From assembly GCA_009103225.1 (NCBI GenBank), contig RHPI01001168.1, positions 187,337-251,336 on the forward strand: a DNA stretch of 64,000 bases. The letters are read 5' to 3'. Within the stretch, counting starts at the first letter, position 1. Every line of letters starts with the position of its first letter. Source of the DNA: Chlorokybus atmophyticus (taxonomy: Eukaryota; Plantae; Mesostigma and Chlorokybus algae). A program made the translations under genes and the position numbers. The notes beneath the pieces were generated by a model, which saw only the letters and a program-made list of their open reading frames with translations, was not told the DNA's origin and did not search any database. Shown piece after piece: positions 157-54,399 of this stretch.

Positions 157-3100
157 ATGGCTGAGGCGGAGGTGCTGGTATTTGACGACAAGGATGATGA
201 GGGCCATGCTGACTATGAGCATGACTATGAGCGCGGCTACAGGGGCGGCGACCCCAGCAGCAGCGGCTCAGACGTGAGTGTTTGCAAGAACACAGTATCA
301 AGTATATGTGTAGGGGCATTGTCTTTCTTCACTCAGTTGCTCACGTTCACTTGGGCTAATCGATGTCGCCCTGTCTCAGGTTGTGCATGCGGTATATCCG
401 CTTGATTGTCATTTAATGTGTACACCTGCAATGCTAGCCATGCAAGCCAGTCTATAGCACAATGTCTGATTACATACATGGCAGCACATGCGCATGCACA
501 CGCGCAGAGGTACGCAGACTTGGATATGCGCACGTACGCACCCGCGCTTGAACGTGTGCAACCTTGTGTCTACGCGCACAAGCGCACATATATATGCCTA
601 ACGGACGTGTGTCAGGCATACATATGTGCGCACGCACGCTGTGCAATCCACTTTGTGCTGGTGTTTTCTTCTTTGGTGCTTTGTTCATATAGGTTGTGTG
701 TATACGGTTCAGACTCTTGTTATGGTCATGCGGACACCTATAGCTAACCACTACTGTCTTCAGCACTCCTGGGGCGGCGCCATCCCCGAGCTCGCCGATA
801 TCCGCCGCGCTGTTTCACTCTTATCGGACGACTCCGCCGATATCCGCGCCGCGGGAGCAAAGGCACTAACGCCCGTCGCACGCACGCGTCCACGCCACTC
901 TTGTGGCATTGTGTTGTGGTGATCTGTTGATGTGTGGGTTGTTGATTAGGTTCTGGAAGGGTTTCATCCGGCGGACGTGGCGTACAATCTGATGTGGCCT
1001 GAGATTGTGAGCGCGTTGACGCGTGGCCTCGCCGATACGGAGACCAGGTGTGTACAAGAGGCAAACGACCCGTATGCGCGCACGAACACAAGCATGTGTG
1101 CTTATGTAGCTCATTTTTTTTGCCATGTGTACAGTGCATGCCACGAATAAAGCAAACACTACTGATGCTTTTGTGTGTGCGGTTGCGGCATGGTGTGTAC
1201 ATGCACACACGGACGCACACGTGCGTACGAACACGTGTACATTATGTGTACAAGTTGGATACGTGCACGACACATACGGCGTGTATATCGATACAAACAT
1301 CAAATGCATGTACGCGTTGCACAGGTGCAACATGTGTACACATCTCAGTGAGTGTCTTGTTGTTGTAGTGAGCGTGAACAGATGCCACAATATGCAGGGA
1401 CTAATCCATCACTGCTGCAGAGTCGCAGATTTCGCTCTGCGCTACCATCTCGCCCTCTTTGACGAGCTCCTTCTCTCCTCTCCTCGCCAGGCTTGCGATA
1501 TCGTCGGGAGCCTGATCATCCGCAGCACGGCATCTGTTATCGAGGCCGGGGTTGGTCGCGATGACGCGTTTGATCAATACCCACTGAACAGCGACGTGCT
1601 TCGTGAGGTGAGGAGTGTTTGAGGGGTGTTTGTATGGTGGTGTTGTTTGTGTGGTTTTTGTGATCTCTTTGTGGTTAATGCAGTTTCGTCTCTTAGATCA
1701 CTTCCTGAGGGGGATAGCGAGACATCTGCATTACCTTCCCGAATGCCAGCAGGCTGCGTTGATGGCAATGCTGACCTCCTTGATGAGGTGCATGTTTATG
1801 CAGTAATGTTGTTGTTCAGTCTAGTTTATGCATGGTTATTTGCATACACAGACGTGCACATACACCCACATATTTGGCCACATGCAGTTATCCAGCAAGT
1901 CAAGTCGGGTGTCACACACGCACTGTGTGTGTGTACACACTGCGCGTGGGTCACACCCGCAGTCACAAGCGCATACCCATGTGCACACATGAACGCGCAT
2001 GCACGCGCAGACGTGTATGCGCAGATGCTGACATTGGCCCTGCCCGCATACATTGCAGGTTGTGCATTGACGGCGCTTACATGGCGATTGTCGACCCGAC
2101 TGCCACTTGGCTAAAGCTATGGTGCATCGAAGTGCCCGTCCGCACGCGCTTCATTAACCACCTCCACAAAGCCGGCGTCCTCGACGCGATATACTCTCAT
2201 TGCTGCAGCACCAGCAGCTGGATATCAGACCCTGCCACCGATATCCAGCTCATGTGGTGGATCTCCGTGGCATGCCAAGCAATTGCAACAAATGCGGGAA
2301 CTGCCTTGAGCTCGATATCGACGAGCGAGGTCCTGTCGGCTGCTATTGGCGTTGTCACAGCAGCTGTGACGGCGGATATCGGCTCCGTGTATTGCAATGG
2401 AGTCTTGCCTGCTGCTGCGGATGGACTCGTGCGCGTGGCGGAAGCGTGCGAGTGCAGATTGGATATCAATCATATTGCGCAGTTAGTTGAGGCGCTACAC
2501 ACCGTCCCTCAAGAGGTTAGTCGAAACGCGGTTACTATCACAAGTGTATCAAAGCTGCATTCTGACACACGTGCACGCTTGCACATGCACGCGCACACAC
2601 GTGCATGCACACGAACACATGCCTGCACGTACACATGCATGCGTGCATGCACATGCACACACTCACCCACGCATGCGCGTGCGCGTATGTGATGGGTGTC
2701 TGTCCGCTGCTTGCAGTGAAACTTCAATTCCATTACAGGCAAGTGATGCAGTTTGGGTGCGCTATTTGGCCCTCGGCGATATTTTGCTGGCTTTTTCCAA
2801 CAACGTCGCCAGCAGGCATCTGCTGTGCGCTCCTTTCAACAGCGCAAGCAGCAGTGACGATGTTACTACTGCCGTGGATGCGATATCGACATTCTGCATC
2901 AGAGGTCTAGCCGCGGTAGCGTCCCAAAGCTGGCCATGCGGCATCCTCAAACAGTACCTGCGGTTGATATCACGCCTGGCATTATATCCATCTGCTGGAG
3001 ACATATTGGCTGACAAAAGTGGCATAGTGGAAGCGATCAGTCAGGCCTTTGCTCACAGAATGGATATTGAGCGGGAGCTGGCTGATGTTTTGGTGGCATT

Positions 3101-4000
3101 TGCGGGGTCGAAACGGGGTTTGGCTGCTGTTGAAAAGACAAATGATATCGCCTCTCGCCATCTGTCTCAGCGCCTTTGCGAGCAATATCGGTCTGCAGTT
3201 GTGCAGTCTGTTGACTTCAGGGAGACCGCACAGGCTTTGGTGGCTGCTGTGCACAGCGATATCGCCTCCAAGGCGCTGATAGAAGCCGGTTTGCTGAAGG
3301 AGATGTGTTACAAAGTCCAGGACTTGTTGAATGAAGATTATCTCGTGGAGGCACTTGCTTCAAACTGTGATATTGAGTACCCATTTCTTGCGCAGTTGCA
3401 TCTGATTGAGACTCTCCTCAAGTCACCGCATCTGATATCCGCCGCAACCTCCTTTTCCTCTCTTGATAACAAAGCTTTAAGCTCGCCAGTGAGGGACTCA
3501 ACGGAGATATCGGACGTATGGCAGCTGATAACGTCCCTGGCGCTGCCAATGACAGCCGAGCAGCGGCGCTCACTGCCTCAGTTCATCGAAGCGCACCATG
3601 TTGGGTTACGACTGCTTCGGGCGTTGTTGAGTGCAACCACGCAAGCGCGCAAGTTGCTTGATGAAAGGTGGCGTGTCAGAGTGTCACTTGCAGAGCTGCA
3701 GAACATCAACGGTGCGGTGATAGATGCCAACTCTTTACTGAGGCAAGAGATGTTGGATATGGTCAGTAAACAAATGTAATATACAAGAGGATGCTGTGGA
3801 CTGCATGTTATGTGTAACATTGCTGGCACGCAAACTGCAGTGGTACAGTTGGGATTCACTGCTACACATCACAGGCAGCCTGCGCTGTAGACATTGCTGT
3901 GACGTTAGCAGTAGTCACTCCATTGTTAACAGAATTGTCTGCGATGCATCATGTGCACTCATCTGTTGAACTGGCAGAAGCGCAGTTGTCAACAAAGTGA
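157..4000 (+). CDS. TBC1D32: BROMI (Broad-minded/TBC1D32)-like protein, N-terminal BROMI region only; ~8 exons, ~750 aa
   Basis: Spliced exons give VLEGFHPADVAYNLMWPEIVSALTRGLADTETQ, FDELLLSSPRQACDIVGSL, FRLLDHFLRGIARHLHYLPE and YMAIVDPTATWLKLWCIEVPVRTRFINHL. These are collinear with recalled TBC1D32 blocks (PPSDVLNCENW..L...LSDPDP; LLSP...EIY.SL; VRLLNEYQKE.P.FW..HPE; FALVD.KA.WFKKW....SR..V..LL). ATG at 157. The long exon has a donor ATG|gtcagt near 3764, and a final exon 3875-4000 ends in TGA. Confidence 0.7.
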
Positions 4001-4297
4001 TTCATTAAGTGAATACATGCAGCCTGACACAAGGAAACCCTGGGTGAAGCTGTTGATGACGAGAGTCATGAGTTGAACTGGCAATGCAGCAATTCAGTTG
4101 TCAACAACAAAATGGTTCATGAAGTGCATATATGCACCCTGACCTAAGGACACTTTGGGAGAAGCTGTTGAAGATGAAGATGACTAACAGGCGTTGGTGA
4201 ACACCCACAACCATGCTTGAAGTTGTCAAGACAGTCACACATATTGGCGCTACGTAGTGACAAGATGCGTGACAGGGCAGCAACGCACATTTGTACA

Positions 4298-6512
4298 TCA
4301 GCTGCGTGGGTTTGTTGTCCGCTGCAAGTCCAACCAGAGCAGCAGTGTCTGGTCCAGCACAAGGTGCGCCGGCAGCTTGCAGGACGTGAACACGGGCCCG
4401 TTGTCGTCAAAGTCGCGCAGCACGACAAAACCGTGTTGCTCGTAAAGAGCACGCGCGGCACCGTTGCGTACGGCCACGTGAGCATACAGATCCGGCATCC
4501 CTTAACGACGACAACAGAAGTGTTATGTCTTACATTATGGGCCATGGCATGCAACATCATGTAGAATATGGACGGTGTCTTTGTGCGCGCATGTGTGTTT
4601 GTGCGCGCTTGCGAGTACATGTACGTGTGCATGCATGCGTGTGCATTGAGTTCGCATGTCGATGCGTGCGTGGGTGCATGTATAACCATCATTCACCAAA
4701 GCAGCAACTTACCCCACAAAGCAGCCTCGTCAAGAGCATGCTTCAGCAGGTGTGATGCAATGCCCCTGCATGGCACAGTCCAGGGCACTGAGAGACAGTA
4801 TCCCTGAATCCTGCAAGCACATGTGGCATATACAAGGACCGTGGCATATATTGCTATCCCACCTTCGCCTCTCGCTGCCCGCGGTGCACATGTTGGCCAT
4901 GTACGCGTACTCCAGGGCCCAGGGAGGGCTGAACCCGCCATACGCATCATCCGACAGCCTGTAGCGCCTGAGAGTCTCTAGCAACTGCGTCATTGAAGCT
5001 TAATGACGCAGTTGCTCAGTTTTTTTTATAAACAAAACTCTGACAGTGACCTATGTAGTCTGTCAGTAGCGTACCCGTAAGCGGGTGTGGCCGGGAGCTC
5101 GTCTCAGTGAGACGTCAACAGACCCAATGATCTCCTCGCTAGCACCTACATGCTGTACCTGCAACAACTCATGCTGTAAGACACAAGACAAGGCGTAGGA
5201 TAAGGAGGAGTTGCTGCGTGCTGGGCAAAAGGATTGCAAACAGGAACGCATGACGGTCGCACCGCAATGAAGCATGTGCACCGCATGATGGAGGACACAG
5301 TGCCTTTCAGTCGCTTCGTGAGCGCCCTTGCTTCCTGTCAATCAACACTCAGTGAAGGAAGCTTTACTGACGCTCATAGAACAGTGCAAACATTCAATGA
5401 GCCTTACCTGCTCGGCAAAGCGTTGAATAAAGCTGTCTACAAACCTGCCAACAAGAGATGTACTTGCTGAATTACGTGCAAGCTAGCTTGGCAAATAATA
5501 CAAAAGCGTTACTGATATTGCATGTTGTAGGATACAAACGAGGTGATATACAGAACAAGCGATGAGTTGGATTATAAAGTTTGCCAATGGATGCAATCAA
5601 GACCAGCGTTGATGCCCAGGGTGTCCCTCGCACACACAGAGCTTTCTTACACAAACCCATTCTGAAGTGCACCTTAAATAAGGCTGACCTTCATAAAATG
5701 CCCTTGCCCGAAGCATCGCCGTGTTCTGCACAGCAATTGTCCTTGTCAAAAGAGGCACATACAATGCACCTGAGAGACTGCGACGCATTAAGACTTCACA
5801 GAAGCAAGGTGTTGTGTTTACAAAGTCAGCTTGTCGACACCCCTAATGTTGGGGAAGCATGCGCAAGAGCAAAACATGACATGCGATAATTCATCGGCAC
5901 CAATAAATGCCAGTGCCTTCAATCACATTATTGTGCCGCGAAATAAACGCGCAAAGTGTGCGTTGACACAGCACTGCAATTTGTATGGTCTACCAAGCTG
6001 TTTGTTATTGTTATCACATACACGCAATAACTACTGGAAAGCATGTCAAAACGTTACAAGTGCTTAGATACGCCATAGCAACTCACCCAAATATCCTCAT
6101 CGCTTTCAGGCTGGCGCACGTCAAACCGCAAGCTACTGCTGCCGTTGGCTTCCTGCTGCTGCTGCTGCTCCTGCTGCTGCTGAAGTCGTTGCTGCTGAAA
6201 CTGCTGCTGAATATGCAGTTTGTGCTGTTGCTGAAACTGTTGCCTGAGCTGATGTTGCTGCCATGTGCTGCCGTGAGAGAGCTGAAGCCGTGTCGCTGCC
6301 CTTTTCCACCCAACAAGCTCCTTCCCCTCAAAGTGTTCATGCTGTCTCACACCATGTGCAGGCCTACAGGAAGAAGACAGCGACAAGGGCGGCGGCGGCA
6401 GGAGCGCATGCAAAGCGCTGTACACCGCTGCAGGCATCCTAGCTACACTACATGCCTAGGCCTACTGCTCACAACAAGCTCCTTGCACAGGCGCAACCAC
6501 CATCATGGCCAT
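4298..6512 (-). CDS. GNAT N-acetyltransferase, plant plastid GNAT6/GNAT7-like, with N-terminal poly-Gln region
   Basis: Exons join in frame: LRFDVRQPESDEDIW / NTAMLRARAFYEGQPYLR / FVDSFIQRFAEQ / EARALTKRLKG / EEIIGSVDVS / EYAYMANMCTAGSERRR-GIASHLLKHALDEAALW-GMPDLYAHVAVRNGAARALYEQHGF / LLLWLDL. Acetyl-CoA motif A (R-R-R-G-I-A) and motif B (N..A..LY...GF) are present. Confidence 0.85.
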
Positions 6513-10764: not shown

Positions 10765-11041
10765 TTACTTTGGTGCACCTCGCAGTAAGTTTCGAAGGCC
10801 CCGCTCGTGACTTTCGCCCAGTTTTGTCAGGACTTTGGCGTGGCTCTGACCTAAGGCCTTTAAGCCACGCTCGTGGCTGCGCCCTACACTGTCGCCGTGG
10901 TAGGTCATGCCCTTCAAGAGGGCCGCTCCCAGTACCAGCATCGCCACTGCCAAGGATGTAAAGAGTTGTTACCAAAACGGCCGCATTGCGGGTGGCGTCC
11001 ACCGCCTCGCTTTCAGGCATCAAGCCAGAACCGTTGGCCAT
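10765..11041 (-). pseudogene. Small single-pass membrane protein with 11-aa repeats (SHERGLxxLGx), apparently interrupted by a 1-nt frameshift
   Basis: MANGSGLMPESEAVDATRNAAVLVTTLYI joins, by a 1-nt shift at TAC ATC C TTG GCA (~10955), to LAVAMLVLGAALLKGMTYHGDSVGRSHERGLKALGQSHAKVLTKLGESHERGLRNLLRGAPK*. The join creates one continuous hydrophobic helix. Homologous coding fragments occur at 60.9-61.1 kb. Confidence 0.45.
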
Positions 11042-11758
11042 GTTGTCTCAACCTCAACCGACCCCTGCCTCGCCGCCCCTCGTCACACATTTTACACGGT
11101 GACTGACAAGGGACTTAGGGACTGACGGGTGCCTGACCCTACCGGACGTAACGGATTGGTTTATTAAGGGACTTTTATTAAGACGACCGTTACTATCAAG
11201 CAACATATACCGACGGCAAGCGGTCGACCGATAAGAACAATCGACGGCGGCTTGCCTGTGACGGCAACACCGCACTTTAAGGTGACGGCCGATTGTCGGT
11301 CGTCCCATTTGGCGTGTAGCAAGATCCAGGTGGACACTTTTGGTGCAACGTAATGCTAACTTTCAATGTAATCAACTGCAATTTGTCATTTTCAAGATAT
11401 ACAATATTAGTTGACACTATGTGCAAGCTACTTGCAGTTGAGGCAGAGTTTGCGTTTATGCACGATATGTTACGCTATTGATGACTTAAGCAACACATCT
11501 GAGCGTGTTATTTCTCAACTAGTTTAAGGCAAACTCAGAGCATCTTGAACTTGCTAAGCTATGGCAATGTGCTTGTCATGCATAGGAAGCACGCCCCGAT
11601 ACCTCTAAAGATCTTTTACATAGAAGTAAGTTCTATACACACAAGGGCAACCGACACATCATACACAACCAAGCCAACTATATGTCCTACTGTACAAGAT
11701 TATCTCTGGGAGCAACAGTTGGACATGCTGATAGCAGCAAGGTAGTAGAACTCTATTA

Positions 11759-14700
11759 TCATAAGCCTTCAAAGCGGCGAGGCATTGCCGGAGACTTGGC
11801 TTGCACTTGGGATGGAGAGTTGGCTTGCAGGCTCAACCACATCCAAGTGTGGAAGGCTCGGCACATGAGACTCCTGCTGTGACTCCTGCGGCCAGCACTG
11901 CTTGCAGCCTTCAACATCTCGGCAGACACTGCAACCTCGGATGTTGCTGCCTGCGTTGTCTTGCCTTGTCTGCCATTGCCTGCTTCCACTCATCAGACAC
12001 GTCGGGGTGGTGATCGATGCATAGGGTCTACTGGACCTCTTCCTTTCCTATGAAGCGTGTAATGCACAAGTCGTGCAATTGCTTGGCACACCCAGCTGCG
12101 CCGCACTTGGTGGGGTACATGCTGTCGAAGTCAACAGTGATATTACAGTCAGGGACAGAACAGCCTTTCACATATTGTGGGCGGCTCCCCGAGGCCACAT
12201 CTGACTTGTAAATTTGCTCATTTGTTTTTTCATCAAGGACATTAGCCTCCTTGGGGCTGTTGGTTGGCAGGTTCACAACGTTGCAAATGATGGGCTTCGC
12301 TTCATTGGGCGAGGGCTCGCCGTCATCGCCGCTTAGATAGTTGAGGTCCAAGAACTTATCCATCAAATTCGCCAGCCGATGCCGCCATGCCTCTGCAGCT
12401 TGCTTGGCCTCTGCAGCAGCATCGTCGTCCTGCTCTGCATCTGAACTCTCCTGCTTGTTGCTGTCGCCTTCATCCTTGTGCTCATCAGCAGCAGGCTCTA
12501 CAGCAGCTTCAGCATCCGGGTCCATAGATGCAGCGTCAGCTGGGGGATCGACCTTTTGCAGCTCGTCGTGCAGCTCCTGCCACTTCTAATCGTCTGCCAT
12601 TTCTTCCAGCGCCTCTACGTAGCCATTCACTGCAAAAACACATGCGGATTATGATACCTCCCGTAACTGCTCCTCGGCAATGCTCACATGTCACAACACA
12701 AGGCGCTTACTTGTCACAGCATTGGCCACTGATTCAGACACCCACTGCTTTACTTTCTTGAATTTGTCGTCACCCCAAGCTTCTTGCGCAGCGTTGTCCT
12801 TGGTCAGCCACTGACCCAGCATCGCAAGGTGCCGAGCGAAGTTGTGGTTGAACCCTGTGAACATTTCACGCACAATCTCCTTAGCAATGGCCGCATGCGT
12901 CTTGACTCGCGGAAGCGGCACAGGCGTCACTGCGGGTTTTCCTGTAAGTGCTGTGTACTCGCTATCCAGTCCGTAGTTGTGCTTCTCCTACGCAAGCAAA
13001 GTGGTCAGCCAAGGAGCTGAGATATGAGAGGTCCATTAACTCAAAGTGCACACTCAAAGCGTGGATGCAGGTGGGATCAGGGTCTACAAGGAATCCGCTG
13101 TACCCTCGCTTTAGGGCATATGTTGCAAAGCCCGCAGCACCAACACCAAGGTCCAAGAAGAACATCTCCCTGGTGTCCTTGCGATAAGGCAAAAAGTCAA
13201 GAGCAAGCCTTCGAGAGAATAGCTGAGCTTGGTTGACCATCTTACTTCCAAACTTCGCCATTTGAGCGGTCCAATAACTCCGCATTCTTTCACTAAGCAA
13301 TGCAATTCTGCGGTCAGCTACTGCCCTGGCGTCGAGCAGAATCTTTAGCGGATCCCGACCCTCATCAACCTTTATCAGCTCCATTCTGGCAACAACCCTG
13401 CTCTTGAGATCTGGATGAGAGGCAAGGTGTTCTCTCAGTTGCGGAATAGTAGGTTAATCGTCGTGATAGCTGGGAAGGCAGAACTTGCGTGGCAAAGCAT
13501 AAACATGCCGGCTACCGACACCGCTCATTCGGGTCCACACTCTTTGATAAAAGCGCTCAAGGTTTGCGTGGTGCAAACCAACATCATTGTCTTCGTCCTT
13601 GAAGCAGGCAACTACCACATGATTGCTGCTGGCCCGAGATGCAAATTACGTGGGAAAAGTAAATTGCTCTACGGAAGACAACACAGTAGCCTCAGTTGCT
13701 ACATCAGGTTGGTGGACCTTGTATATCCTGGAACACAACGACTTACTGCTGCTGGCGTGGTGGTAAGTGGATGTCTCCACAGCAAAGGCATCCTGTCTAA
13801 GAATCTGCACCACGCTGCTAACATGGTCGTCGTCCACGAAGACCATCATATTCCAAAAAGGCAACGGCTTGTTGTGGCCGACCAGGATATCCAACGAGTT
13901 GAAGAAAACACTCGTCAGTGATGCCAAAATCCTCAACGCTGCTGCGATGCTTGACAAACTCAATATCCACGAACATAGTGTAGAGTGACGGCAGAGGTTC
14001 CTCCGATTTGGACAAGCCGTCCAAGAACTGCTGATCAGTGTCCATTCGAAGGACGACACGTTGCCTGACCCTTGGCAGGCGCTTTCTCTTCCAATTCCAC
14101 ATCTTGCGTCTACATGCAACACAGCACAGTCAGTGGCATACACGCACCGCTAATAGACCAACCACATTTGACATTGCTTACTACGTAGATTCCACAGCGC
14201 CTTTAATCTCGGCGGCTGTGTAGACCAGCTTGGAGCCCGTGAGTACTTAAAAAACATCCCGGATGGCGACGGGAAGATCCAAATCTTCAAGTTGTTTGAC
14301 ATCTGTGGGCTGGCCTTGCCCTTTCACCTTGCCTGCCTTTATCGGCTTTTTCTCAACGTCTTTTTTTGACTCTTTCGTCTGTACCTTGGGTCTCGCTGCT
14401 ATCAGCCCTCTCATGAACATGTCATGCTTCTGAGCTCTGAAAAGTGCAAAGACGATCCTGATTGCTGCAAGCATAACAATTGCGTTCAGACACATGGCAG
14501 GCAACTAAGAGAGGTTCAAGATCTTGACCCTCTCAAAGCTGGGTGTTAAGAAAGGTTTAAGAACTTGGAACTCTGCAAGCAAGCAGCTAAGAGTGGTTCA
14601 AGATCTTAAACCAGGTTGAATGTACCCAGGCTTGTTATTCAATGTCTAAAATAAAGCCTTGGCAGCGATAAACCCATAGGATTTGCCTCTTTGGCGCATG

Positions 14701-16980
14701 TCGTCGCAGACGGTGACAAACTCTTTTTTTCTCGAAAAGGACAGCCGGCCGGAGTGCAGAGTCCGGCGGATGATTAACAACGCTGATGATTTGGGGGGGC
14801 TCGAGTTTGGTAAAGTTGTCCAGGAGATTCAGGGAACTGCCCTGCACTGTGTTCGGCTTTCCATCGGCCATAAACAAGTCTTCTTTGCTGTGCAGCACAT
14901 GGAGAAAGCGCTGGTATTCTGGCTTTGAGAGGCTGAGATCCATCGCAATACTGCGGTAGCAATGTAATTAATGGAGATGTAGAAAGCTGTATCGAATGTT
15001 GTGCACTATATACAGATACATTTTCAAAGTCGTACGTGACATGGATGCGCTTGGTTTGGGGGACTTTAGCCACCTCGTCATCCGTTAGAGGCGTCAGGGA
15101 CTCTTGCAAGATAACCATCCATGACCGTGCGCAGTCAAGCCACGCTTCAGCCCCCCTTGTTTTGCGGGTCTGCTCAAAAAACAGCTTAAACGGTTGACCA
15201 TGCTGTTTCTAGATTTCACGCATGGCGTGTATGACCCACCATGGCGTGGACTTTTGTCGCAGCTCATCGTGCAAGTTGTGCAGCCTACTCAGGTTGAGAA
15301 TTTGAAGTCTATCGATGTCGGTCACGACCTGTCACATGTAGAGTTGTTGGTCAGTTATTGAAGGTATCATAGCTTGACAACGACAAAGCAGCCTACCTCA
15401 ATGCTTTGAGACGCCCATTTTTTATCATTTGGATGGTCATGATTCCTGCGCTGATAAATTGTCAGCGAGTAATTCCCGCACAGAATCTCAAACTGCCATC
15501 TTTGCTCGATGGGTCCTGCAGAAACTCGTCTGCTAGCACTTGACGCCATTCTGTGGGTCCAGTCTTTTCGAGCACCAATCCTATCCACCGTTTAATTAAT
15601 TGAGCAGGCCAGCGTTGATCTGGCCCTCCCTCACAAGCTTCAGCCTGGCCTCGGTCACCGGTCTCACGAAATGGCCCGGGCGAGCAAGCATCATCCGATC
15701 AAAGGGAACATTGAACAGGGTGTTTCCTCCAGAGGTTTGAACCAAAGGGGGCAGCTTCAACCGATCTAGCAGGTGAAACATAAGACAAGCAAGCGACCAT
15801 CGAATATCCTCTGGCAATGCACTTAGTGATTATGCCTTGAGTTAATGCACACAGAGTAATGACAAGCAGACCAAAGCCGAATACAATAGCTCACTTTTGT
15901 TACTGGTCTCAATGACAAGTGAGTAGCCTGCAGGTTTGTTATTATCGGATTTATCTGAATCATCTGATGTGGACGTGGAAGGCTTAATTGCCTTGCCCTA
16001 ACTGGGTGACACGCTGTTATCGGGCAGGTCTGCAAAGTACAGCAAGAGTAGTATTAGATTTGTCAAGCCCTTGGCAGTGATGTGGTATGCCACAAGCTAC
16101 CTCGCAGCCATTCGAAGATCAAGTCGTCTGTTGGATCCACAAAATGCTTCAGCACCCTTCAGTTGACACTTGCTGCAAGATCCATTCGAGCGGTCACTGC
16201 CTCAACTTCTTTTTACTTGAAATAGGAACCCTTTGCTTTGAACAAGATCAGAAGTTCGGCTTTTGGCACAATGACGTCATTGTCGTCGTTAATATTGCTG
16301 TAGGGCAACCCGAGACAGTAGATGGACTTTCCAGTTTTGCACAACACTCCAAGTAGGGCGTAGGTAGATGTGTTGGCCTGTGCACGGTAAGCTAAGCCGC
16401 ATTGTGGAACTCAAGTAACCCACGCTTATAAACACAACGCTCACTTTACGCTTTACATTAAGACGATAATCTCCCTGACCCATGTACCGCAACTTCCAAA
16501 CATGTTGGCGCTCAGCTTGACCTCTTGATTTCAAAACTGCAACGCTTGGTACGAGGATGACTTTGATTGAATTTTGCTTTTTAGCCCATGGCAATTCTAG
16601 ATCGCTATCTGTCAATACAAGCTTGTCACGTACTTGTAAACGTCACACACAATTCAGATCAAAGACATCTGCTGCACACCCTTGGTTACTCACATGAGTA
16701 GATGACGGGTTCATCTGCATCACTGCTGACGCTGAAATCTTCTTGGTCTTGCTATTTGTTGTCGCTGGGCTGATCGTCACTGGTGTCTACTTGCTTCCTG
16801 TCCTGCTTGTCATCATCAGAAGAAATCTCAACCGGCTTTTTTAAGCTTTCTGGAACTTTTAGGTGTCTTCTACGGAGGAGTCTTGTCTTGCTTCTTCTTT
16901 GTGGCACTTTTCATCGGCTGCGTGCTTGCAGGCTTTCGTTGCGGTCCCTGACCAGGGCTAACAATTGCCAGAGGTTGTCT
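11759..16980 (-). pseudogene. Decayed multi-exon gene: ParB/Srx-like domain + beta-class N6-adenine/N4-cytosine DNA methyltransferase-like domain + PHD-like Zn finger
   Basis: Intact-looking GT-AG exons with many stops and frameshifts. Motifs: WQFEILCGNYS..LNLSRLHNLHDELRQKS (~15.2-15.5 kb, ParB-like GNH region); SLYTMFVDIEF (~13970, motif IV position); KMVNQAQLFSRRLALDF..EMFFLDLGVGAAGFATYALKRGYSGFLVDPDPTCI (13070-13250, SAM-binding motif I C-terminal to motif IV = beta permutation); CSVPDC..CGAAGCAKQLHDLC..LCIDHH (12000-12170). Confidence 0.65.
14511..14612. repeat. Three copies of the AGATCT-centred palindrome at 41-bp period, inside an intron of the MTase pseudogene
   Basis: gaggttcaagatcttgaccctc (14511), aaggtttaagaacttggaactc (14552), gtggttcaagatcttaaacc (14593). 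Confidence 0.85.
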
Positions 16981-17303
16981 GCAGTTCACAACGTAGTAAG
17001 ATCATACGTGGGAAGCAATTGTACTTTACTTGAAAACTTTAAGAGCAGGAAGCTAAGGGAGGTTTAAATTTTTACTCTATTCCCTTTTCAGCGCTGCGCT
17101 CTATTCCTGTCTCCGCATTCTATTGCACTGCCCTTTACTTACTACCGGTTGCATTGCATGCTGGTAATCAATAGCTGCTGCGCTGGTCTGCATGCAGCAA
17201 ATTTTCGATTGTGGGTAATCTAAGGATGGGTGCATGCGGGGGCTGCATTGCATTGCATTGCATTGCATTTAAACTTTCAAACTTCCAAGAGCAGGCAGCT
17301 AAA

Positions 17304-17492
17304 GAAGGTCTAAGATCTTAAACCTTCCTTAACTTGGAGTAAAGGGAGGTCCAAGATCTTAAACCTCCAAGAACAGGCATCCAGGGGAGGTTTACGATCT
17401 TGCACCTCTAAGTGCCGGCAGCTACGGGAGGTCCAAGATCTTGAACCTCTCTTAACTGTAAGTCAAGGAAGGGTTCAAGATCTCTAACCTCC
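17304..17492. repeat. Five copies of a ~24-bp palindrome (consensus GGAGGTYCAAGATCTTRAACCTCC) at exact 41-bp period
   Basis: Copies start at 17304, 17345, 17386, 17427 and 17468. Spacers alternate between two types (cttaact...agt and aagaacaggcagcta). A partial copy lies near 17058. Confidence 0.9.
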
Positions 17493-18833
17493 AAGAACAG
17501 GCAGCTATGGTTGTTGGCGGAGGCGGCGGTGTTGTTTTCAGCTGGGCGCTAGTGTGTTTCAGTAGATCCCACTGTGTAGAGTGCAGCTAAAGCTTGCAAG
17601 TTGTAATTTGCAAGGTGAAAGACCTGGTGCGGTAGCTGGTAAGTAAGTGCTGGCTTTGGGCGGTGGTATGGGCGGCGATGTGGGGGCCATAGGGGGTGGC
17701 GAGAGCGAGCCAGGTAAGTTGAAGCTTGCTGCTCTACTTGATCGTTAGGACGTTTGTAAGCTAGTTTTAGCGTAAAGCGCTGAACACATGAAGACTTGCG
17801 GTAAGGGTTGCGCTGTCCCAGCGCTCATGCAGGTGGTTTGATCAGCGGCAGCATACATGGCGCCACCTAGCAGGTACAATATCCGTGCGTTATAGTCTGG
17901 TATGCATTGTTTGACAGTTAAAGATTGATCTTGCTATAATGCACACCATACGCTAGTTGCTGCAGCAGTAAATCCTGTGCTGGTAATCAGCAAAACCGCA
18001 AAGCGCAACATATAGAGCTGCATGCACACATCAAGTTGCAGCAAGCAGAGACATTTGCACACACACACATGTTGCTTATGTGATTGTTTCTTGCATGGTA
18101 AGCACGATGTACTGCAGCAGGGGAGCTGCCCCTTGATGTATACACAGTTGGCATGTACTGGCACACACCCATCATTTGTCATGCAACATCCGCATGCAAG
18201 AGCACGCGTACACATATACACAGATGTTGTAACCTCATTACTGTGTAGTTCTTGCAATTGCCTTTGTACTCAAATGGTATTGTCACAACCGCACCTAAAG
18301 CCCTTCAGCGTGAGATGTTGTCGTTCCCAGTCTGCAAGACTGTGGTACTAGCATTCTTGGTCCATTGCTTGTCAGGCAGCATACATGAGATCTTGGACAC
18401 GGATTGACGTTCAAGGACCATGAATGGTCCGTGACGCAGGACCGGGATTTCCCCCTGCTAAATGAAATCGGTAGACCTTGCATGGTCTGTTTTTCATCGA
18501 CAGTCGGACCATTCATGGTCCGAATTTCACGTGAATGGTACCATTGTCCCTTGGTACGCACCACTTAAGGTCCGGCCGATTACTGTTGCGTCAGGACCAG
18601 GTATGGTCCGGCCATCGGACCAGGGACTAAATCATATCATTACAAAACTTCAATCATAACTGGTCCGGCCAGCGGACCATGAACCGAAATTTATTATGGA
18701 CCAATGTAAATATGAGTGCAAATGCAGTAAAAGTTGACACATCTTTGCCGGCGGCACCGGCCACGCCCAACCTGCGGCGCACGAGGCCGCGGCCAGCTCC
18801 GCGGCGTTAGTGGAATGATTAGTCAAGAACACA

Positions 18834-18906
18834 CGCATCGACCGGATTCGAACCCAGCACCTTTAGCATATCAAAGACGACGCCCTAACCACTAAGCTAC
18901 AAGTGC
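18834..18906 (-). pseudogene. tRNA-derived sequence (pseudo-tRNA or SINE-like head) with intact Pol III A and B boxes
   Basis: Minus strand GCACTTGTAGCTTAGTGGTTAGGGCGTCGTCTTTGATATGCTAAAGGTGCTGGGTTCGAATCCGGTCGATGCG is 73 nt, with A box TAGCTTAGTGG and B box GGTTCGAATCC. Anticodon, T and acceptor stems pair poorly. Confidence 0.7.
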
Positions 18907-19904
18907 ACGTACCGGTAGGGTCGCAGGGCAACCTATATCATGTAGTTTATTGCATGCGCCGACAGCCGCTTGGCGACTGTCGGCCGGCGGCAGTAATTGC
19001 CGATGGACAGTCGGAGATTGTGTGTCGCTTTGATAGGCCCACAGGCTGAGCCTATGCAATTGTAGCATCTATAGGCTGTACCAGTTACATGGACGGTGGT
19101 AAACTACATACCGGTAGCCGCGAACTCGGCGGTTGTCAATACGCCAGTACAATTTGTAGACTTGTTAGGGGCTGTCATTGTGACAATGCTTAGTGATAGT
19201 AGCCAAATTGCGACTGTCAATGCAGCCAGTGTACCTTATCGGGCTGTCGATGATTCTGTGGTCGCATGAGGCTTTTATATGCCATTGATGAGGTTATACC
19301 AGTAAGGCTATAAGTCATAACATCTGACATTGCTTGCGCTTTCGTTTTATACAAAATATTAACACCAATCATACCATAAACTGCGCTTAGCAATGCAACA
19401 TGCGAACAGCATCAACATATGTATTCATGGTATGATGTTAACGGTTGTGAACATTATGATAATGTAATAACCAACGAATTATATTTAATGCAATTAACAC
19501 GCGCAATGCATGGATGTAAATTTGATATAGTTATTATTTTAGACTATGTAATTGTACAGTAGTCATAACACTTTGTACAATCATATTTTTATACATTATT
19601 TAAGATGTATATAATTTTGCATATGAAAGGTCTAATGCACATGTGTACGCGCATCAATATACTTACAACAATGTATGTACATGAAATGATAGATATGAAG
19701 TAATTGCACGGCTGCAAATTGCGGCCGCAATACGTCAACAATTTCTGCTTGTATACCTTAAGCCTATTCCTACATGCACACACACACACGTATATTTGTC
19801 AACATATATATACATATGCATGTATACATATATATATAGGTGTGTATATATACACATATATTTATATGTATACACATATCCATTTATACATATATAGGCC
19901 ACAA

Positions 19905-20005
19905 GTGGACAGCCGCAACTGGTCGGCGGCTGTCAAGTTAAAATGTACATGGACAGCCGGCTGTCAATATACATTGACAGCCGCCGACCATTTGCGACTG
20001 TCCAC
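19905..20005. repeat. ~100-bp near-perfect palindrome (GACAGCC/GGCTGTC family)
   Basis: 32-bp outer arms (19905-19936 vs 19974-20005) are 30/32 complementary, around a perfect central gacagccggctgtc (19952-19965). The same motif recurs at 18960-19260. Confidence 0.85.
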
Positions 20006-20465
20006 TTTATGGTAAGCGGCGACAGTCGGTGCGGCCTGTCATTTATTAAATGATACACACAATGTACCTATGTACTCGTACATGCAATAACGATACTTCA
20101 GTCATGGTACACGTGTAGCGCGCCCTGCAGGGCCGCCAACCAGCAACATTGCTGGTCCATGCCGCCCCATACATGGTGCGGCACGGACCATGTACGGTGC
20201 GCGGCTGCCGGGCCGCTGAGCCGCGGGCCCACTCCTGGTCCGCATCCAGGAACCAGCGTAGAGTACTGGTCCGTGCCGCACCATACAAGGTGCGGCACGG
20301 ACCATATGTGGTGCGCGACTGCGCGCCAGGTGTTGGGGCCCCACAAGAACCATGGACGGTCCGTCCCTCGCGGACCAGACACTCGTGGTCCGCGGGGACG
20401 GACCATGTATGGCCCGCGGGGTCCGTGGAAGGTCCATGCATGGTCCCCGAACGTCAATCCGTGTG

Positions 20466-20680
20466 GGAGGTCTATTAACTTCAGCCGTTGTGCGTTCTTG
20501 GACCTTCAAGATCTCAGGTCATAAATGCCTCGATGCCTGAGATCTTGGAGGTCCATTAACCTCACTCGTTGTGTGTTACTAGACCTTCAAGATCTCAGGT
20601 CGTCAATCCCTCGATGCCCGAGATCTTGGAGGTCCATTAACCTCACTCGTGTGTTACTGGACCTTCAAGGTCTCAGGTCG
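20466..20680. repeat. ~81-bp tandem repeat (about 2.7 copies), each with two inverted AGATCT-containing motifs
   Basis: gaccttcaagatctcaggtc at 20501 and 20582, variant at ~20660; cc(t/c)gagatcttggaggtccattaacctc at ~20536 and ~20617. Confidence 0.85.
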
Positions 20681-21883
20681 ACAACTTTACTCATTGTCAC
20701 ATAAAGCTGGAGTGGCATTATTCTTGCCCTCAGCACGGTAAAGGAGAACACGACGGCCAGGGAGGAACATTAAAGCACCTTCTCGGCAGGGCAGTGCTGC
20801 AGGGAGAACTAGTTTAATGTGCATTCGAGATAAAATCTTGTGCAAATTGCAATAACAGCTGTTTTGCCTATCCTAGGCCCGTTTTTATAACTTTGAAGCG
20901 CCCAAGCCATTTGCAAAAAGTGTCCCCCCGGATCCTGCTACAAGCCATTTGCGCGATGGCGACCTATCCGTATAGCAGATAAGTCACGTTTTTGTCACAT
21001 ACAGTGGCCGACCGTTGGTCTTACCCTGACCGTCGAAAAGTATGCGCGACGGCCTGCCTACTTTGGCAAGTCAGTCACCGTTAGTCCCTATCAGGTGACC
21101 TTACCGCGTTTATTAAGTGACTGTCGATCGCCGGTCGTGCACTTAACGCGGCGGCGACCTACTTATTGTGTGTCAAGTATAATAAGCAAGTGATCGCCGG
21201 TCCCTAAAGCTCGACAAGTCGGGACGGTGGTACCGGCCGGCAAGTCGCGACGCTGATACAATGCAGCCGCCTTACTATGTCAATGGTACGAACAGTAACT
21301 AATGGTACGATAGTGCTATTGCGACAATGTTACTTTCGTACCACTATAACAATACGATAATAATGCCGTTGCGAGTCACGTTTCGACAACGCGTTTGAAT
21401 AACTTGGGCTACCCAAGTTATTTAAACGCTCGACGGCTTCAAGTTGAACAGAGCGTTGTAGGCGGCGGCGGCGGCGGCGGCAACAGCTAATGATAGGTGA
21501 GCTTGGTTGCTGTCTGACGTTGTACTACGCGCAACACCGCATGCCATCTAACCACCCTCCTTGCCTTAGAGCGGCCAGGCTAGGCCAGACCAGGCCAGGC
21601 GGCGGAGAAGGAACGGCGGCGGCGGAGCTGGAGCGGGCGATGCAGGAGCCGCAGCTCAGTACAAGGGTAGTACTAACAGTAGTACCTAAGGTAGTAGTAG
21701 CAGTAGTGGTAGTGGTAGCAGTTGTGGTAGTCTAATTGTACTAGCAGTAGTGGTAGTAGCTCAGTATATTACATTGCAAATTATTTATTTCTTTGTTCTT
21801 TATTATTGATAACGCATTCTTGCACAGCTGATGACGACAATCACGTGTGACATCTAATCATGACTGAACGATACCAGCGGGTA

Positions 21884-26042: not shown

Positions 26043-27295
26043 CCACTAGGTAGAACAACCAGGAAAGGCCCTCACACAGGAGGGTAATGAAGGCTCCTTT
26101 AACAGCTAAGCCAAGCACTCTATAGACACAGCAAGTGAGCACTAGATTGAGTCCAACTGAACCGTTCAGTTCCTGGAGTTAAACTCCCGGAGTTGGCAAC
26201 GCCATGCTGGCCTAGCCTATTGTACTCCTCCCTGTTGCCTTCCCACTTGGCCACAGCTGAACTGAAGAGCCATCAACGCCTTCCGCCCACATAATGCTAA
26301 CACATTATATTCTCTTAGCCACATAGTGTCCTCGTGGACATGATCAAGAGGTACTAGCATATGCCACTGTCGTATGCCCACATAGTGTGACACATCATGA
26401 CATGATGTCACGTCAGCCAAATTTATATCAATAAGCACTGCCAGTGTCTATTTATATACATGGCTCAGGTATGATGATCACACCTCAGCTTGCTGTGTGC
26501 GTGACACCATGCATTTATTATATTAGTCTATCATCTTTTATACACGGTGTGACACAATACATGGGTGTGATCTCATCTATCCCCGCATGTCACATCATTC
26601 CCCGCATGTCACATTCTACTTGCTTATCGCTAATTAGCAACTGTCTCATGGCATGTTCCCGGATCAGGTTGTGCAAGCTGTGTATCACTGCCGGGAATAG
26701 TTTATCCTGCCCAAGGCTTATAAGCATAATGACTGACTGTATGAGCAAACCACTTAGATACTGCAAACACCCAAGCAATTGATCGATTGTATGGGAGTTA
26801 AAACTCCAATGCAATCATGCTATAAACATAGCATTATTATGACAGCTAAGAGCGATTGTGCCTTGCCCGTTGGGCGTGAGAGTGATCTGCCAGGTGTGTC
26901 CATGTGCATGCGTGCGAGGTCATCAATTTCATCGTGCTGATTCTGCTAGTTGGGTGAGTGCTGTGGCCGGTTGCTTGATGATCTTCAATTTGTGGCAATA
27001 TGTTGCTTACTTCAATTGCTTGTTTGGCAAAGTGTGACTACAAGCCTTTCAACCAACAGTTGCTAAGTGTGTCCGTGAGCATGCATGTGCGCGAGACTTC
27101 ATCAACTCCACCAGGTTAATCTGCAATTTGGGTGATTGCAGTGGCCTGCTTTTTGGTCTCTGTGTTGTTGTGGTTGTTGTTGTTGCTGTTATGTTGCGAC
27201 ATGTGTGCTGCACTTGCTTGTTTCGCACAGTGTGACTACAAGCCTCTCGGCCTTGATTTGCCAGGTGTTTGTGTGCATGTACGCGCGACTTAATT

Positions 27296-27524
27296 AACTC
27301 TTTCAATTAACCTGCTGGCTAAGTGAGTGCTTAGTACTTGGTAATCCTTGCCGTGCCAGTGTACATAAATAATCAAGAGTATTCTACACATGCAACCAAT
27401 GTTTTGCAAACTCTTTCAATCAACCTGCTGGCTAAGTGAGTGCTTAGTACTTGGTGATCCTTGCCGTGCCAGTGTACATAAATAATCAAGAGTATTCTAC
27501 ACAAGCAACCAATGTTTTGCAAAC
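27296..27524. repeat. Tandem duplication of ~113 bp
   Basis: aactctttcaat(t/c)aacctgctggctaagtgagtgcttagtacttggt...gttttgcaaac occurs twice with few substitutions. More degenerate related units lie at 26880-27290. Confidence 0.9.
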
Positions 27525-48094: not shown

Positions 48095-48466
48095 CCCCGC
48101 CGCCACCGTCGCCGCCGTCGCCTACATGCACACCCACATGCACCTTACCTGACGCCCAGTTGACGTGCATTACACATCAGCACATTAAGGTGACTAACGC
48201 ACCAGATCAGCCTTAACTTGCATCTTAACAGGCCGTTACAGCATAATGGAGGGCAATGACCGGTGATAGTCAAAATAAATCTGGCAGCACCCGGCGCTCT
48301 GTGCTGGTTGAGGCCGCTACGTGGATACGCAGTCTGCTTATATAACCGGCAACTGCCGGCCGTGCAAGTACGGGCAAGCAGGCAGCTTACTGCACGCAGC
48401 TTAAAGCTGCCTGAAGCGCAGGGTGGAGGAAGTGAAGGTGGAGGAGGACAAGGTGGAGGTGGGGCG

Positions 48467-51400
48467 ATGGGGTGGTGTTCTTCTAGAGCGCTGCTTACTG
48501 CTGTCGCCTTGCTGCTGGCTGTAGCTGGTTGTGAAGTTCATGCACAGTTCCAGCAGGAGCATGCCGTCATCCGGCAGTACAACACCACTGCCCAGCGAAA
48601 GGAGGGCGTCCTGAACGTCCACCTTGTAGCCCACACGCACGACGATGTCGGCTGGTTGAAGGTGCGAGCAAAGCTTAGAATCTTAGAACAATCAGCTAGG
48701 CTTGTTACCTTAGCTTTACAAATGCAGTGCATGAGGCATGAGCACTGCATTGCAATGCATTGCATTGCTGCAGTATGCCTTACGTAGACATGCTAGATGG
48801 TGACTGCTGCTTATGCTTGTGCTTATGGCAGACGGTAGATCAGTACTTCTACGGGGCTCGCAATGACATCCAGACGGCGTCAGTGCAGTACATTCTCGAC
48901 ACCGTGCTCCAGGCCTTAGAGGAGGATTCAAACAGGCGTTTCATCTATGTGGAGCAGGTTGGTGCGGACGAGTACAAATCGTTGCTTTGCGTCGTGTTTG
49001 CCACCAACGCAGGCTTTCTTTAACTGTCGTTCTGCTAGGCCTTCTTCCAGCGCTGGTGGCGTAGGCAAAGCGACAGTCGCCGTGACCGCATGCGCCGTCT
49101 CGTTGCAAATGGCCAACTAGAATTCATGTAGGTGCAGTGGTTGCAGAGTCAGCAGACGTTGCACCCATCGCTTGTTTGCAGTCGTCCGTCGCACCGACAG
49201 CCTGCATGTCAATATAATGCTCAGGGAGTACGGAGTTGGTGTTGCTACTGTGTTGCACAGGTCGCTGCAGGTTTTTACTTGGCTCAACATTTGTTACATA
49301 ACAATGACCATTGCTGTCGAGTCTGTCACTTCTGAGTCTGTCGCTATTGTACCCCGACCATCGGCGTAACTTGGTGCTTCCCAGAGCTCAGTTGCTGGTT
49401 GTGTGCAGCAATGGAGGGTGGTGCATGCACGATGAAGCAGCGACGTACTACACTGCCATGATCGACCAGACGGCCCTTGGCCATCGCTACATCAAGCAGC
49501 AGTTCAACGTCACCCCAACCATTGGATGGCAAATCGACCCTTTCGGCCACTCTGCGACACAAGCAACTCTCCTGACGGCAGAGGTAATGCACTAAAGATA
49601 ATAGACACAGGAGTGTTGCACATGCCCTGCCAGATGATGTCCTGCGTGCTGGGGTCGTCAGTGGTGATCAGTCTATGTACACAGGTCGGCTTTGATGCCA
49701 CTTTCTTCGCGCGCATCGACTACGAAGACAGGGCTCTACGACACATCAACAAGGGCATGGAGATGATCTGGCGGCCATCCCAATCCTTGGGCAAGACCGC
49801 GCAGGTGCTGGCTGCAGCATAGCAGTATGTAATCGAAATTGGCAGAAACCTTACCATTGGTCACTATAAGGACCTTTGTGCAGACATTCGCAGGAGCTTT
49901 CTACCAGCACTATGACCCCCCATGGGGTTTGAACTGGGAGATCTGGAGCACAGACGCACCAGTCATGGATGACCCTATATTGCAGGACTACAATGTGGGG
50001 GAGCGTGTTGAGCGCTTTGTGCAGGCTGCTCGGCAGTTTGCTACAGCATATCAGGTTGGAAGAAGCAAGCTGCACTTGTTACGTTACCCGGTCGAAACTT
50101 ACACTGCACACTATACTGGCAGGGTAGCGACGTCATGTTCACCATGGGCAGTGACTTCCACTACTCCAATGCCGATCAGTGGTTCCAGAACTTGGACAAA
50201 ATCATGCATTACGTCAATCAGGATGGTCGCGTCCATGCTCTGTACTCAACTCCGTCAAAGTACCTTGCTGCCCGCCACGCTGATAGCGATGCATCCTGGC
50301 CTCTGAAGACTGACGACTTTTTCCCTTATGCGGACTGTCCGCATTGCTACTGGACAGGGTGCGAAGCCTTCGTCAATGCATGCATGCTGCCTGTCAGTGT
50401 TCTAATGATGTTCTCTGCAGCTACTTTACCAGCCGCCCGGCGTTGAAGGCATATGCAAGTGGCGGGTCCTCCTTTTTGCAGGCCGCACGGCAGCTAGAGT
50501 GGGCAGTTGGTCGGCGTAAGGATGCCAACACCGACGCTCTTGAAGAGGCCGTTTCCGTTGCACAGCACCATGATGGCGTGTCAGGCACATCGAAGCAGCA
50601 TGTGGCAAACGATTACGCACAGGTTGGTTGCTGATTGACAGCGTGCTGATGCTAACCCCATGCGGCGTGTATGAGCATGTGCAGCTATTCAGCGTCAATG
50701 CGTCGGCTTTGAGCGTAATCTGTGTTGATGTAGTCATGTCCTCCCTTAACAAGATGTTTGCCTTGTACAGCGCATATCTGTGGGAATGGATGAAGCCACC
50801 AATGTCGCAGTAAAAGCTATTGAGCAGCTCGCAAGCCCGTCCGCTACTGAAATGCTTCGCCTCCCATCAGAACCCATGCCAGAAGCCTCATCCGGCAGGC
50901 TTTTGTTATCCCAATGCCCTCTTGCAAACATCAGTGTATGCCCACCATCAGAGCAGCTCACTGTCAACGAAACACTGACAGTGATGGCCTACAATCCTTT
51001 GGCATGGGCCCGCGAGGTGGTTGTGCGACTTCCTGTATCAACATCTTACATTTCCGTCACAGGCGACAACGGCGAGCCAATCACTGCTCAGATACTGCCG
51101 GTCAGTTGCGTTAACCTGTACATGCACTACGTGCATTGTCACGCAACCATGGCACACTGCATGTAAAAGTGGTAGTGCATGCGGAAGCGCAGACCTCAAG
51201 TTGATGCAGCTGTCACTTCCATGCAGATCAGCGATGCAACAAAAGCCGTGCGTGCACGGCAGCAACAGTATAGTGGAGTGCCAGAGGGTGCAAGGTCGCA
51301 GTCCATGTACGAGCTGGTGTTTCTGCTTGACACTCCACCAGTTGGGTATGCTGCAGCTACACTGTGGGTGAGGGAAGCTCCATCGCCCCATACAGCTGTT

Positions 51401-54303: not shown

Positions 54304-54396
<93 letters not shown>
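54304..54396. repeat. Poly(C) run of ~93 nt next to an N; length probably an assembly artefact
   Basis: Homopolymer abutting an ambiguous base; a second G-run/N gap lies at 54700-54720. Confidence 0.85.
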
Positions 54397-54399
54397 NGG

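Follow-up and report, generated by a model that had tools for sequence, protein, structure and literature searches.

A decayed transposon-like element with element-specific reading frames and phased palindrome arrays in the streptophyte alga Chlorokybus atmophyticus

The 64,000-nucleotide stretch of Chlorokybus atmophyticus DNA analysed here (contig RHPI01001168.1; called the window, in whose numbering all positions are given) contains, between positions 11311 and 20946, a segment with the structure of a terminal inverted repeat (TIR) transposon flanked by a 4-bp target-site duplication (TSD), which carries element-specific coding sequence and phased palindromic sites. Our preferred explanation, to which we give a probability of roughly 0.55, is that a cut-and-paste DNA transposon inserted here once, long ago, equipped with element-specific open reading frames (ORFs) and three arrays of a 22-bp palindrome, and that it is now dead. 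The work covered the single copy present in the window. An earlier reading of the same DNA, made from its letters alone and called here the sequence-only reading, had seen in this segment a new system in which a transposon carries a ParB-like, amino-DNA-methyltransferase and Zn-finger gene together with palindromic sites.

The ends of the element are marked by an imperfect pair of 31-bp TIRs with ATTT on the outer side of each (Table 1), just as the sequence-only reading had described them. A repeat search of the window returned inverted-repeat arms at 11310-11341 and 20916-20947 (32 nt, 88% complementary), and base-by-base reading showed agreement between the left TIR and the reverse complement of the right one at 27 of 31 positions, the element termini being GGCGT/GGCTT. 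When a degenerate pattern derived from both arms was scanned over the 64 kb, it matched these two sites alone (expected 0; found in 0 of 100 shuffles). The DNA on both sides of the insertion, at about 11000-11310 and about 20950-21100, is rich in the motif GACGGC/CGACCG, which occurs eight times in kilobase 11, four times in kilobase 21 and fewer than four times in each remaining kilobase of the window. This shared motif appears to be what a small pre-existing repeat, split by the landing of the element, would leave behind. Elsewhere in the window there is neither a second copy of the element nor sequence like it, and scanning the TIR against viral contigs gave 0 matches.

One may ask whether this is a single transposon at all, as the two 31-mers could be the ends of unrelated repeats, the two ATTT copies a coincidence, and the ORFs and arrays could be lineage-specific host sequence, or a satellite, in the course of decay. 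That one copy is seen, that a 4-bp match arises by chance once in 256 cases (1/256), and that neither homologues nor further copies were found would all suit such a view. However, the 27/31 inverted match, absent from all shuffles, begins exactly where the ATTT repeats do, the palindrome motif family described below ends at the TIRs, and the two flanks share the GACGGC/CGACCG cluster as if one repeat had been divided by an insertion. We regard this explanation as very improbable.

Table 1 Features of the element at 11311-20946, with positions in the window.
Feature	Positions	Strand	Basis or description
Left TSD copy, ATTT	11307..11310		direct reading
Left TIR, GGCGTGTAGCAAGATCCAGGTGGACACTTTT	11311..11341	+	repeat search and degenerate pattern scan; 27/31 vs right TIR
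Distal coding block ('gene B', or 3' half of one long gene)	11911..14492	-	frames and coding signal
Intron, GT-AG, frame-preserving	12710..12630	-	81 nt
Array 1	14501..14623		three 41-bp units, each with palindrome GAGGTYCAAGATCTTGRACCTC; repeat and motif scans, unit alignment
Proximal coding block ('gene A', or 5' half)	14638..16914	-	frames and codon score
Intron, GT-AG, frame-preserving	16444..16378	-	67 nt
Intron, GT-AG, frame-preserving	16693..16609	-	85 nt
Array 2	17254..17517		about six 41-bp units, palindrome as in array 1; repeat and motif scans, alignment
Spacer between arrays 2 and 3	17518..18387	+	870 bp; no ORF, no Pfam match
Nested non-autonomous element, unrelated	18398..20463		2.07 kb; CACGG...CCGTG termini
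Degenerate full-length tRNA-like sequence	18834..18906	-	inside nested element; Rfam tRNA 23.1 bits, gathering 29
Array 3	20466..20679		2.7 units of 81 bp; repeat and motif scans
Right TIR	20916..20946	-	repeat search and degenerate pattern scan
Right TSD copy, ATTT	20947..20950		direct reading

The three palindrome arrays, likewise recognised by the sequence-only reading, all lie inside the element. Arrays 1 and 2 are built of 41-bp units, whose alignment consensus is GCAGCTAAGnGAGGTTCAAGATCTTnAACCTCnnAGAACnG, and each 81-bp unit of array 3 holds two half-sites in opposite orientation (…CAAGATCTCAGG / CCTGAGATCTTGGAGGTCC). Array 1 stands between the coding blocks, either in an intron or in the region upstream of gene B, array 2 precedes the start codon of gene A by 340 bp, and about 240 bp separate array 3 from the right TIR. 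The motif is restricted to the element: the half-site GAGGTYCAAGATCT, with up to 2 mismatches allowed, is found 19 times in the window where 0.42 are expected, and all 19 sites fall within 12343-20634. The best-conserved part of the 41-bp unit is the 22-bp palindrome itself, with 76% pairwise identity as against 51% in the spacer in a palindrome-anchored alignment.

Outside the element the palindrome was scanned against viral contigs, with 0 matches, and against metagenome contigs, where eight loci collapsed to three unrelated single sites and were set aside. The exact 20-bp palindrome AGGTTCAAGATCTTGAACCT is present once in each of five JAABU metagenome contigs of one project, in the same conserved context; this is probably chance, as these contigs have no further similarity to the element. 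The density of GATC is 4.05 per kb in the element and 4.19 per kb in its coding part, compared with 1.4-1.7 per kb in the host flanks. The element is thus about 2.5-3 times denser in GATC than its flanks, the element being at random expectation and the host sequence GATC-poor, and about a third of the GATC sites of the element are held by the arrays.

Between about 16914 and about 11911 the minus strand carries some 5 kb of coding-like sequence, with a higher GC content at first than at second codon positions (about 0.59 and about 0.40), and a codon log-odds scan over this region tracked one frame at a time. Gene A starts with an ATG at 16914-16912 and has a basic/acidic N-terminus. The N-terminus of gene B is basic and is followed, after the 81-nt intron, by an acidic tract and then by a Cys/His-rich C-terminus, which reads on sensibly beyond a TAG at 12030. 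The frame is broken many times. In gene A there are in-frame stops at 16872 and 16754 (TAG), 16215 and 15598 (TAA) and 16161 and 16065 (TGA), and in gene B at 14249, 13648 and 13456 (TAA) and at 12964, 12588 and 12030 (TAG). Frameshifts fall in A-runs of gene A at about 16840 and about 14735, and also near 15600, 15480 and 14970, while those of gene B are near 13900 and 12990. Interrupted by 12 or more in-frame stops and by several frameshifts, the coding sequence of the examined copy is a pseudogene, and this copy therefore cannot act as the mobile epigenetic writer that had been proposed. Reading TAG as a sense codon was considered, as four or five in-frame TAGs stand in a sensible context, and was rejected because window-wide ORF statistics give no support to it and because TAA and TGA also interrupt the gene.

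The spliced gene of about 5 kb postulated by the sequence-only reading is recognisable in its coding periodicity and in its three frame-preserving introns, but its frame is repeatedly broken and it may not be one gene. Array 1 is closed in every frame, each of the two candidate frames reaches a stop before it (14649 and 14638), and after it, at 14492, begins an ATG-initiated ORF with a basic N-terminus. What was taken for one 5-kb gene may thus consist of two in tandem, each preceded by its own palindrome array. Alternatively, an intron of about 190 nt may span array 1, in which case there would be one long gene.

A combination of this kind would not be new, since ParB-like and N4/N6-methyltransferase accessory genes and adjacent inverted-repeat arrays have already been published for algal transposons (PMC12477816; bioRxiv 10.1101/2025.02.11.637652). 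In the brown alga Ectocarpus, the element Sola1-1_Ec32 (21.5 kb, AACCG...CGGTT termini, 282-bp TIRs, Sola1 transposase) encodes a 1104-aa accessory protein with ParB-like and DNA-methyltransferase domains, which is suggested to bind, and to modify, the element that encodes it (Genome Biol 2025;26:320, PMC12477816). Plavaka, Mutator, Zisupton and Sola1 elements of red algae carry PAG2, with PF01555 and SET, and PAG3, which is ParB-like with a putative 2-oxoglutarate (2OG) oxygenase; PAG2 is found on Sola1 elements of Chondrus and Kappaphycus (bioRxiv 10.1101/2025.02.11.637652). Tandem inverted-repeat arrays adjoin PAG3 in these algae (Petroll et al. 2025; bioRxiv 10.1101/2025.02.11.637652). InterPro readily detects the PF01555 domain of PAG2 there and finds no domain in PAG1 or PAG3, and the ParB-likeness of PAG3 is an HHpred match with E=0.29 (bioRxiv 10.1101/2025.02.11.637652). 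For chlorophytes, Iyer et al. reported Dam-type methyltransferases fused to ParB and helix-turn-helix (HTH) parts (PMC4738411).

The Chlorokybus element has an element-specific, non-transposase gene between the TIRs of a DNA transposon, and arrays 1 and 2 lie beside its coding blocks, as in the published description of the algal accessory-gene class. It is like Sola1-1_Ec32 in being a TIR transposon with a 4-bp TSD and an element-specific gene, and in its decay, as most copies of Sola1-1_Ec32 are decayed too; it differs in its 31-bp TIRs and its termini, in having neither a transposase nor a detectable domain, and in its host, a streptophyte green alga and not a brown one. The likeness to the PAG cassettes, judged by their description, consists of accessory genes within DNA transposons, inverted-repeat arrays beside the gene, and ORFs that are orphan to domain searches as PAG1 and PAG3 are, whereas the PF01555 and SET domains of PAG2 and the putative 2OG oxygenase of PAG3 were not found in the element. 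At best, the element adds a decayed streptophyte example to a known algal kind.

The ParB, amino-methyltransferase and Zn-finger identities given to the product by the sequence-only reading gained no support from profile, sequence or fold tests, the best Pfam match having E=0.04. Profiles of Pfam, PHROGs and NCBIfam were searched with all stop-free pieces. Neither ParB (PF02195) nor N6_N4_Mtase (PF01555) was matched by any piece even at E<=10; the best Pfam matches were the generic Methyltransf_23 on 12965-13453 (E=0.039) and zf-RING-like and PHD_NSD on the C-terminus (E=0.04-0.13), and PHROGs and NCBIfam gave no match. Among sequences of the PDB nothing scored below E=0.5. A phmmer search of 1.84 billion representative proteins with the 163-aa exon piece, which contains a segment resembling methyltransferase motif I, returned three tandem-repeat artefacts and nothing else. 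Word-indexed searches for homologous proteins with this piece and with the C-terminal piece came back empty, as did related-locus searches of viral and prokaryotic collections and a search for contigs encoding two window ORFs and P0004. No methyltransferase was found by tblastn against 50,697 phage genomes. K-mers of the element had no match in the part of the Ectocarpus transposable element (TE) library that was searched.

In order to remove the handicap of the broken frame, we translated the window in six frames with stops read as X, and searched it with a hidden Markov model (HMM) of our own, built from nine phage beta-class methyltransferases; all scores were below zero and the element was absent from the top rows. 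Two of these nine proteins have an N-terminal stretch that we took as ParB-like by sequence alone, and as queries these presumed ParB-like stretches found no match. The pattern [DNS]PP[YFW], searched over all frames, was not found in the coding frames, its sole occurrence being a DPPW on the non-coding plus strand; 'VFVDDDH' and 'VVNHPPD' are present and neither is a canonical motif IV. A single-sequence AlphaFold2 model of the 163-aa piece was unusable, with a mean predicted local distance difference test (pLDDT) score of 51 that fell below 50 over residues 72-163, the motif-I region included. Two further readings were tried and rejected. A Dam-like (alpha-class) enzyme was suggested by 'VDPPAD', which follows the motif-I-like segment at a distance of about 170 aa; this string lies in an acidic low-complexity tract, there is no PF02086 match, and we put it down to chance. 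For a 2OG oxygenase such as that of PAG3, no HxD...H arrangement was found in the coding frames outside the acidic tract.

Nevertheless, the sequence-only reading could be right in substance, the gene being a true homologue of the Sola1-1_Ec32 accessory protein and of PAG2/PAG3 that is too decayed and divergent to score. In gene A, the stretch FNVPFDRMMLARPGHFVRPVTEARLKLVREGQINAGLL at about 15730-15600 is reminiscent of ParB, and FNVPFDRMMLARPGHFVRPV...LVREGQINAGLL followed, past a frameshift, by DGSLRFCAG recalls at the level of motifs a ParB box, in which GxxRxxA / DGxxR is preceded by 'G-L-L-x-P'; INAGLL (about 15610) and DGSLRFCAG (about 15500) are in separate frames, the latter being readable only past the frameshift. 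In gene B, the segment 'FFLDLGVGAAGFATYALKRGYSGFLVDPDP' at about 13147 contains the motif-I-like 'LDLGVGAAG', again a resemblance at motif level only, and 238 codons upstream of it, at about 13860, 'VFVDDDH' ends a hydrophobic strand, so that 'DDDH' stands in the place of DPPY. The longer string 'FLDLGVGAAG...(17 aa)...VDPDP' can be aligned with LDPFxGSGTT...GiE.dp in the phage beta-methyltransferases used for the HMM. These resemblances come in the expected order, the weak Methyltransf_23 and PHD/RING-like matches point the same way, the 4-bp TSD is like that of Sola elements, and the same combination has been published. A ParB match could moreover hardly be expected, because PAG3 itself has no InterPro domain and an HHpred E of 0.29, which makes the non-detection of ParB here uninformative. 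On the other side stand the failure of PF02195 and PF01555 on every piece, the negative HMM scores on the read-through translation, the unmatched phage ParB-like N-termini, the missing [DNS]PP[YFW] and the unusable fold model, as well as the ease with which PF01555 is detected in red-algal PAG2. Six peptide words of the gene were also absent from the Ectocarpus TE protein file. We take the motif resemblances as a lead and not as evidence, and hold homology to be possible although rather unlikely.

The question of how the element moved turns on its transposase. The catalytic blocks of the Sola1-1_Ec32 transposase (MDGxNQ, DN..ENKN, GHTH..D) were found in no frame of the element, in what is a motif-only and hence weak test. 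Since none of its sequence is recognisable as a transposase, the element most likely lacked autonomy and was mobilised in trans. The ATTT duplication has the 4-bp length of the Sola superfamily, the TSD of both Sola-1 and Sola-2 families of Ectocarpus being 4 bp (PMC12477816). For Sola1 transposons, the sequence-only reading gives AWWT as the typical duplication. By its terminal motifs, GGCGT/GGCTT, the element is to be compared with AACCG in Sola1-1_Ec32 and GGCGG in Sola2-1_Ec32. Sola2-1_Ec32 has GGCGG...CCGCC termini, a 26-bp imperfect TIR and a 4-bp TSD, and is in these respects similar to the Chlorokybus element; however, no Sola2 transposase is seen here, and five shared terminal bases in a member of another phylum are weak evidence.

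It is also conceivable that the long ORF is the element's own transposase, of a superfamily for which Pfam has no model (Sola, Kolobok, Academ, Novosib, KDZ and others), and that the element was autonomous, with the palindromes as the binding sites of this enzyme. Several transposon superfamilies do lack Pfam models (PMC5751038), of the 7.5 kb of the ancestor the ORFs take up about 5, a share like that in simple autonomous elements, array 3 is subterminal, and the TIR holds CAAGATCC, which resembles the palindrome half-site CAAGATCT. Set against this are the lack of the Sola1-1_Ec32 catalytic blocks in any frame, the absence of a homologue of the 163-aa exon from the 1.84 billion proteins searched with phmmer, and the position of the arrays, which stand inside the element, 3-6 kb from its left end, and are missing from the left subterminus. 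We judge this explanation improbable; should the element have been autonomous after all, its transposase would have to be the orphan ORF itself.

For the active ancestor of the dead transposon that we favour, the likeliest working model is one of self-recognition, in line with proposals already made for red- and brown-algal transposons with their ParB-like accessory proteins and inverted-repeat arrays. On this model the element would have coded for a DNA-binding protein, active as a dimer, that occupied the palindrome arrays, in which a phase of 41 bp corresponds to about four helical turns, and this binder would tether the product or products of the element, with whatever enzymatic activity they may have had, to the element's own DNA, for autoregulation, anti-silencing or self-marking. 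The sopC locus of the F plasmid consists of tandem 43-bp units, each with an inverted repeat, that are bound by a ParB-family protein. The arrays described here resemble a centromere of the sopC type in having tandem units of about 41-43 bp with one palindrome each, on one face of the helix and beside the gene of the presumed binder, and differ from it in belonging to a eukaryotic nuclear transposon, in which neither a ParA partner nor a demonstrable ParB fold was found. The orphan ORFs and sopC-like arrays might even represent an undescribed protein family, a self-recognition module tethering its product to its own DNA that has no kinship with the red- and brown-algal accessory proteins of the ParB/methyltransferase type, or is akin to them in fold alone; this we consider doubtful.

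Several points weigh against the interpretation that we prefer. No homologue of any piece was found in any search made, for which reason the putative DNA-binding role is one that we purely infer. Mobility, consistency of the TSD and family size have one copy only behind them. The comparison between palindrome and spacer used an alignment anchored on the palindrome, which favours high palindrome identity. Finally, the left subterminal region has no array whereas array 3 is close to the right end, and the arrays may have served as subterminal repeats bound by a transposase. The examined copy, being dead, adds an anatomical example only. Intact relatives in Chlorokybus, if they exist, would carry the algal accessory-gene transposons into the streptophytes, the lineage sister to land plants, and the sharply defined 22-bp palindrome would offer a candidate binding site open to direct testing.

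To the right of array 2, the sequence-only reading had placed a divergent transcript start with a splice donor, followed by a disrupted unit that might be the lost transposase. The spacer contains two GTAAGT strings, at about 17642 and about 17716, and GCTG|GTAAGT is indeed present at about 17637-17646; nothing marks a transcript start or a functional donor, however, and no ORF lies behind it. The idea of a lost transposase fails on the spacer itself, which has neither an ORF nor a Pfam match, and on the nature of the disruption, which is a nested TE. No coding domain was found in the right-hand 3.4 kb, nested element included. Once the 2.07 kb of the nested element are removed, the ancestral element measures about 7.5 kb, which is too short to hold another large gene as well.

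The nested element is inserted in the first 81-bp unit of array 3, with TGGA / TGGGA as its flanks. Its TIRs, as returned by the repeat search, are about 33-43 nt long and 81% complementary, and it has many GGACCATG/CATGGTCC subterminal palindromes, direct repeats spaced by 114 bp at 20152-20322, and AT/CA microsatellites. Its CpG observed/expected ratio is 1.07, compared with about 0.7 elsewhere. ARAGORN called no tRNA, and the degenerate tRNA-like sequence within the nested element may be the relic of a tRNA-derived short interspersed nuclear element (SINE).

Elsewhere in the window, an ORF at 2487-3776 on the plus strand is 100% identical over 341 residues to jgi/Chlat1/6916/Chrsp52S00516 of EukProt, a Chlorokybus protein of 704 aa in which Pfam has no domain. 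This match identifies the host, and a brown-algal origin of the window, which the Ectocarpus paper had suggested, was rejected on account of it. At about 48260-52960 on the plus strand there is a gene for a GH38 alpha-mannosidase, interrupted by several introns, its N-terminal exon containing HTHDDVGW and its C-terminal exon matching Glyco_hydro_38C (E 3e-13). Runs of N, an assembly gap, are found at about 54300-54700 beside a long proline-coding tract, and 109-bp direct repeats at 54576-54684 and 55005-55113 are close to them. Around 27 kb there are 68-bp direct repeats 198 bp apart (27010-27275) and a tandem 113-bp duplication with 97% identity (27296-27521), both belonging to an AT-richer stretch (24-27 kb) in which GC is about 0.40. 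Low-complexity tracts rich in CA/CACG are abundant (for example at 900-2700, 4100-4700 and 38500) and give rise to long spurious 'HTHT/ACAC' ORFs.

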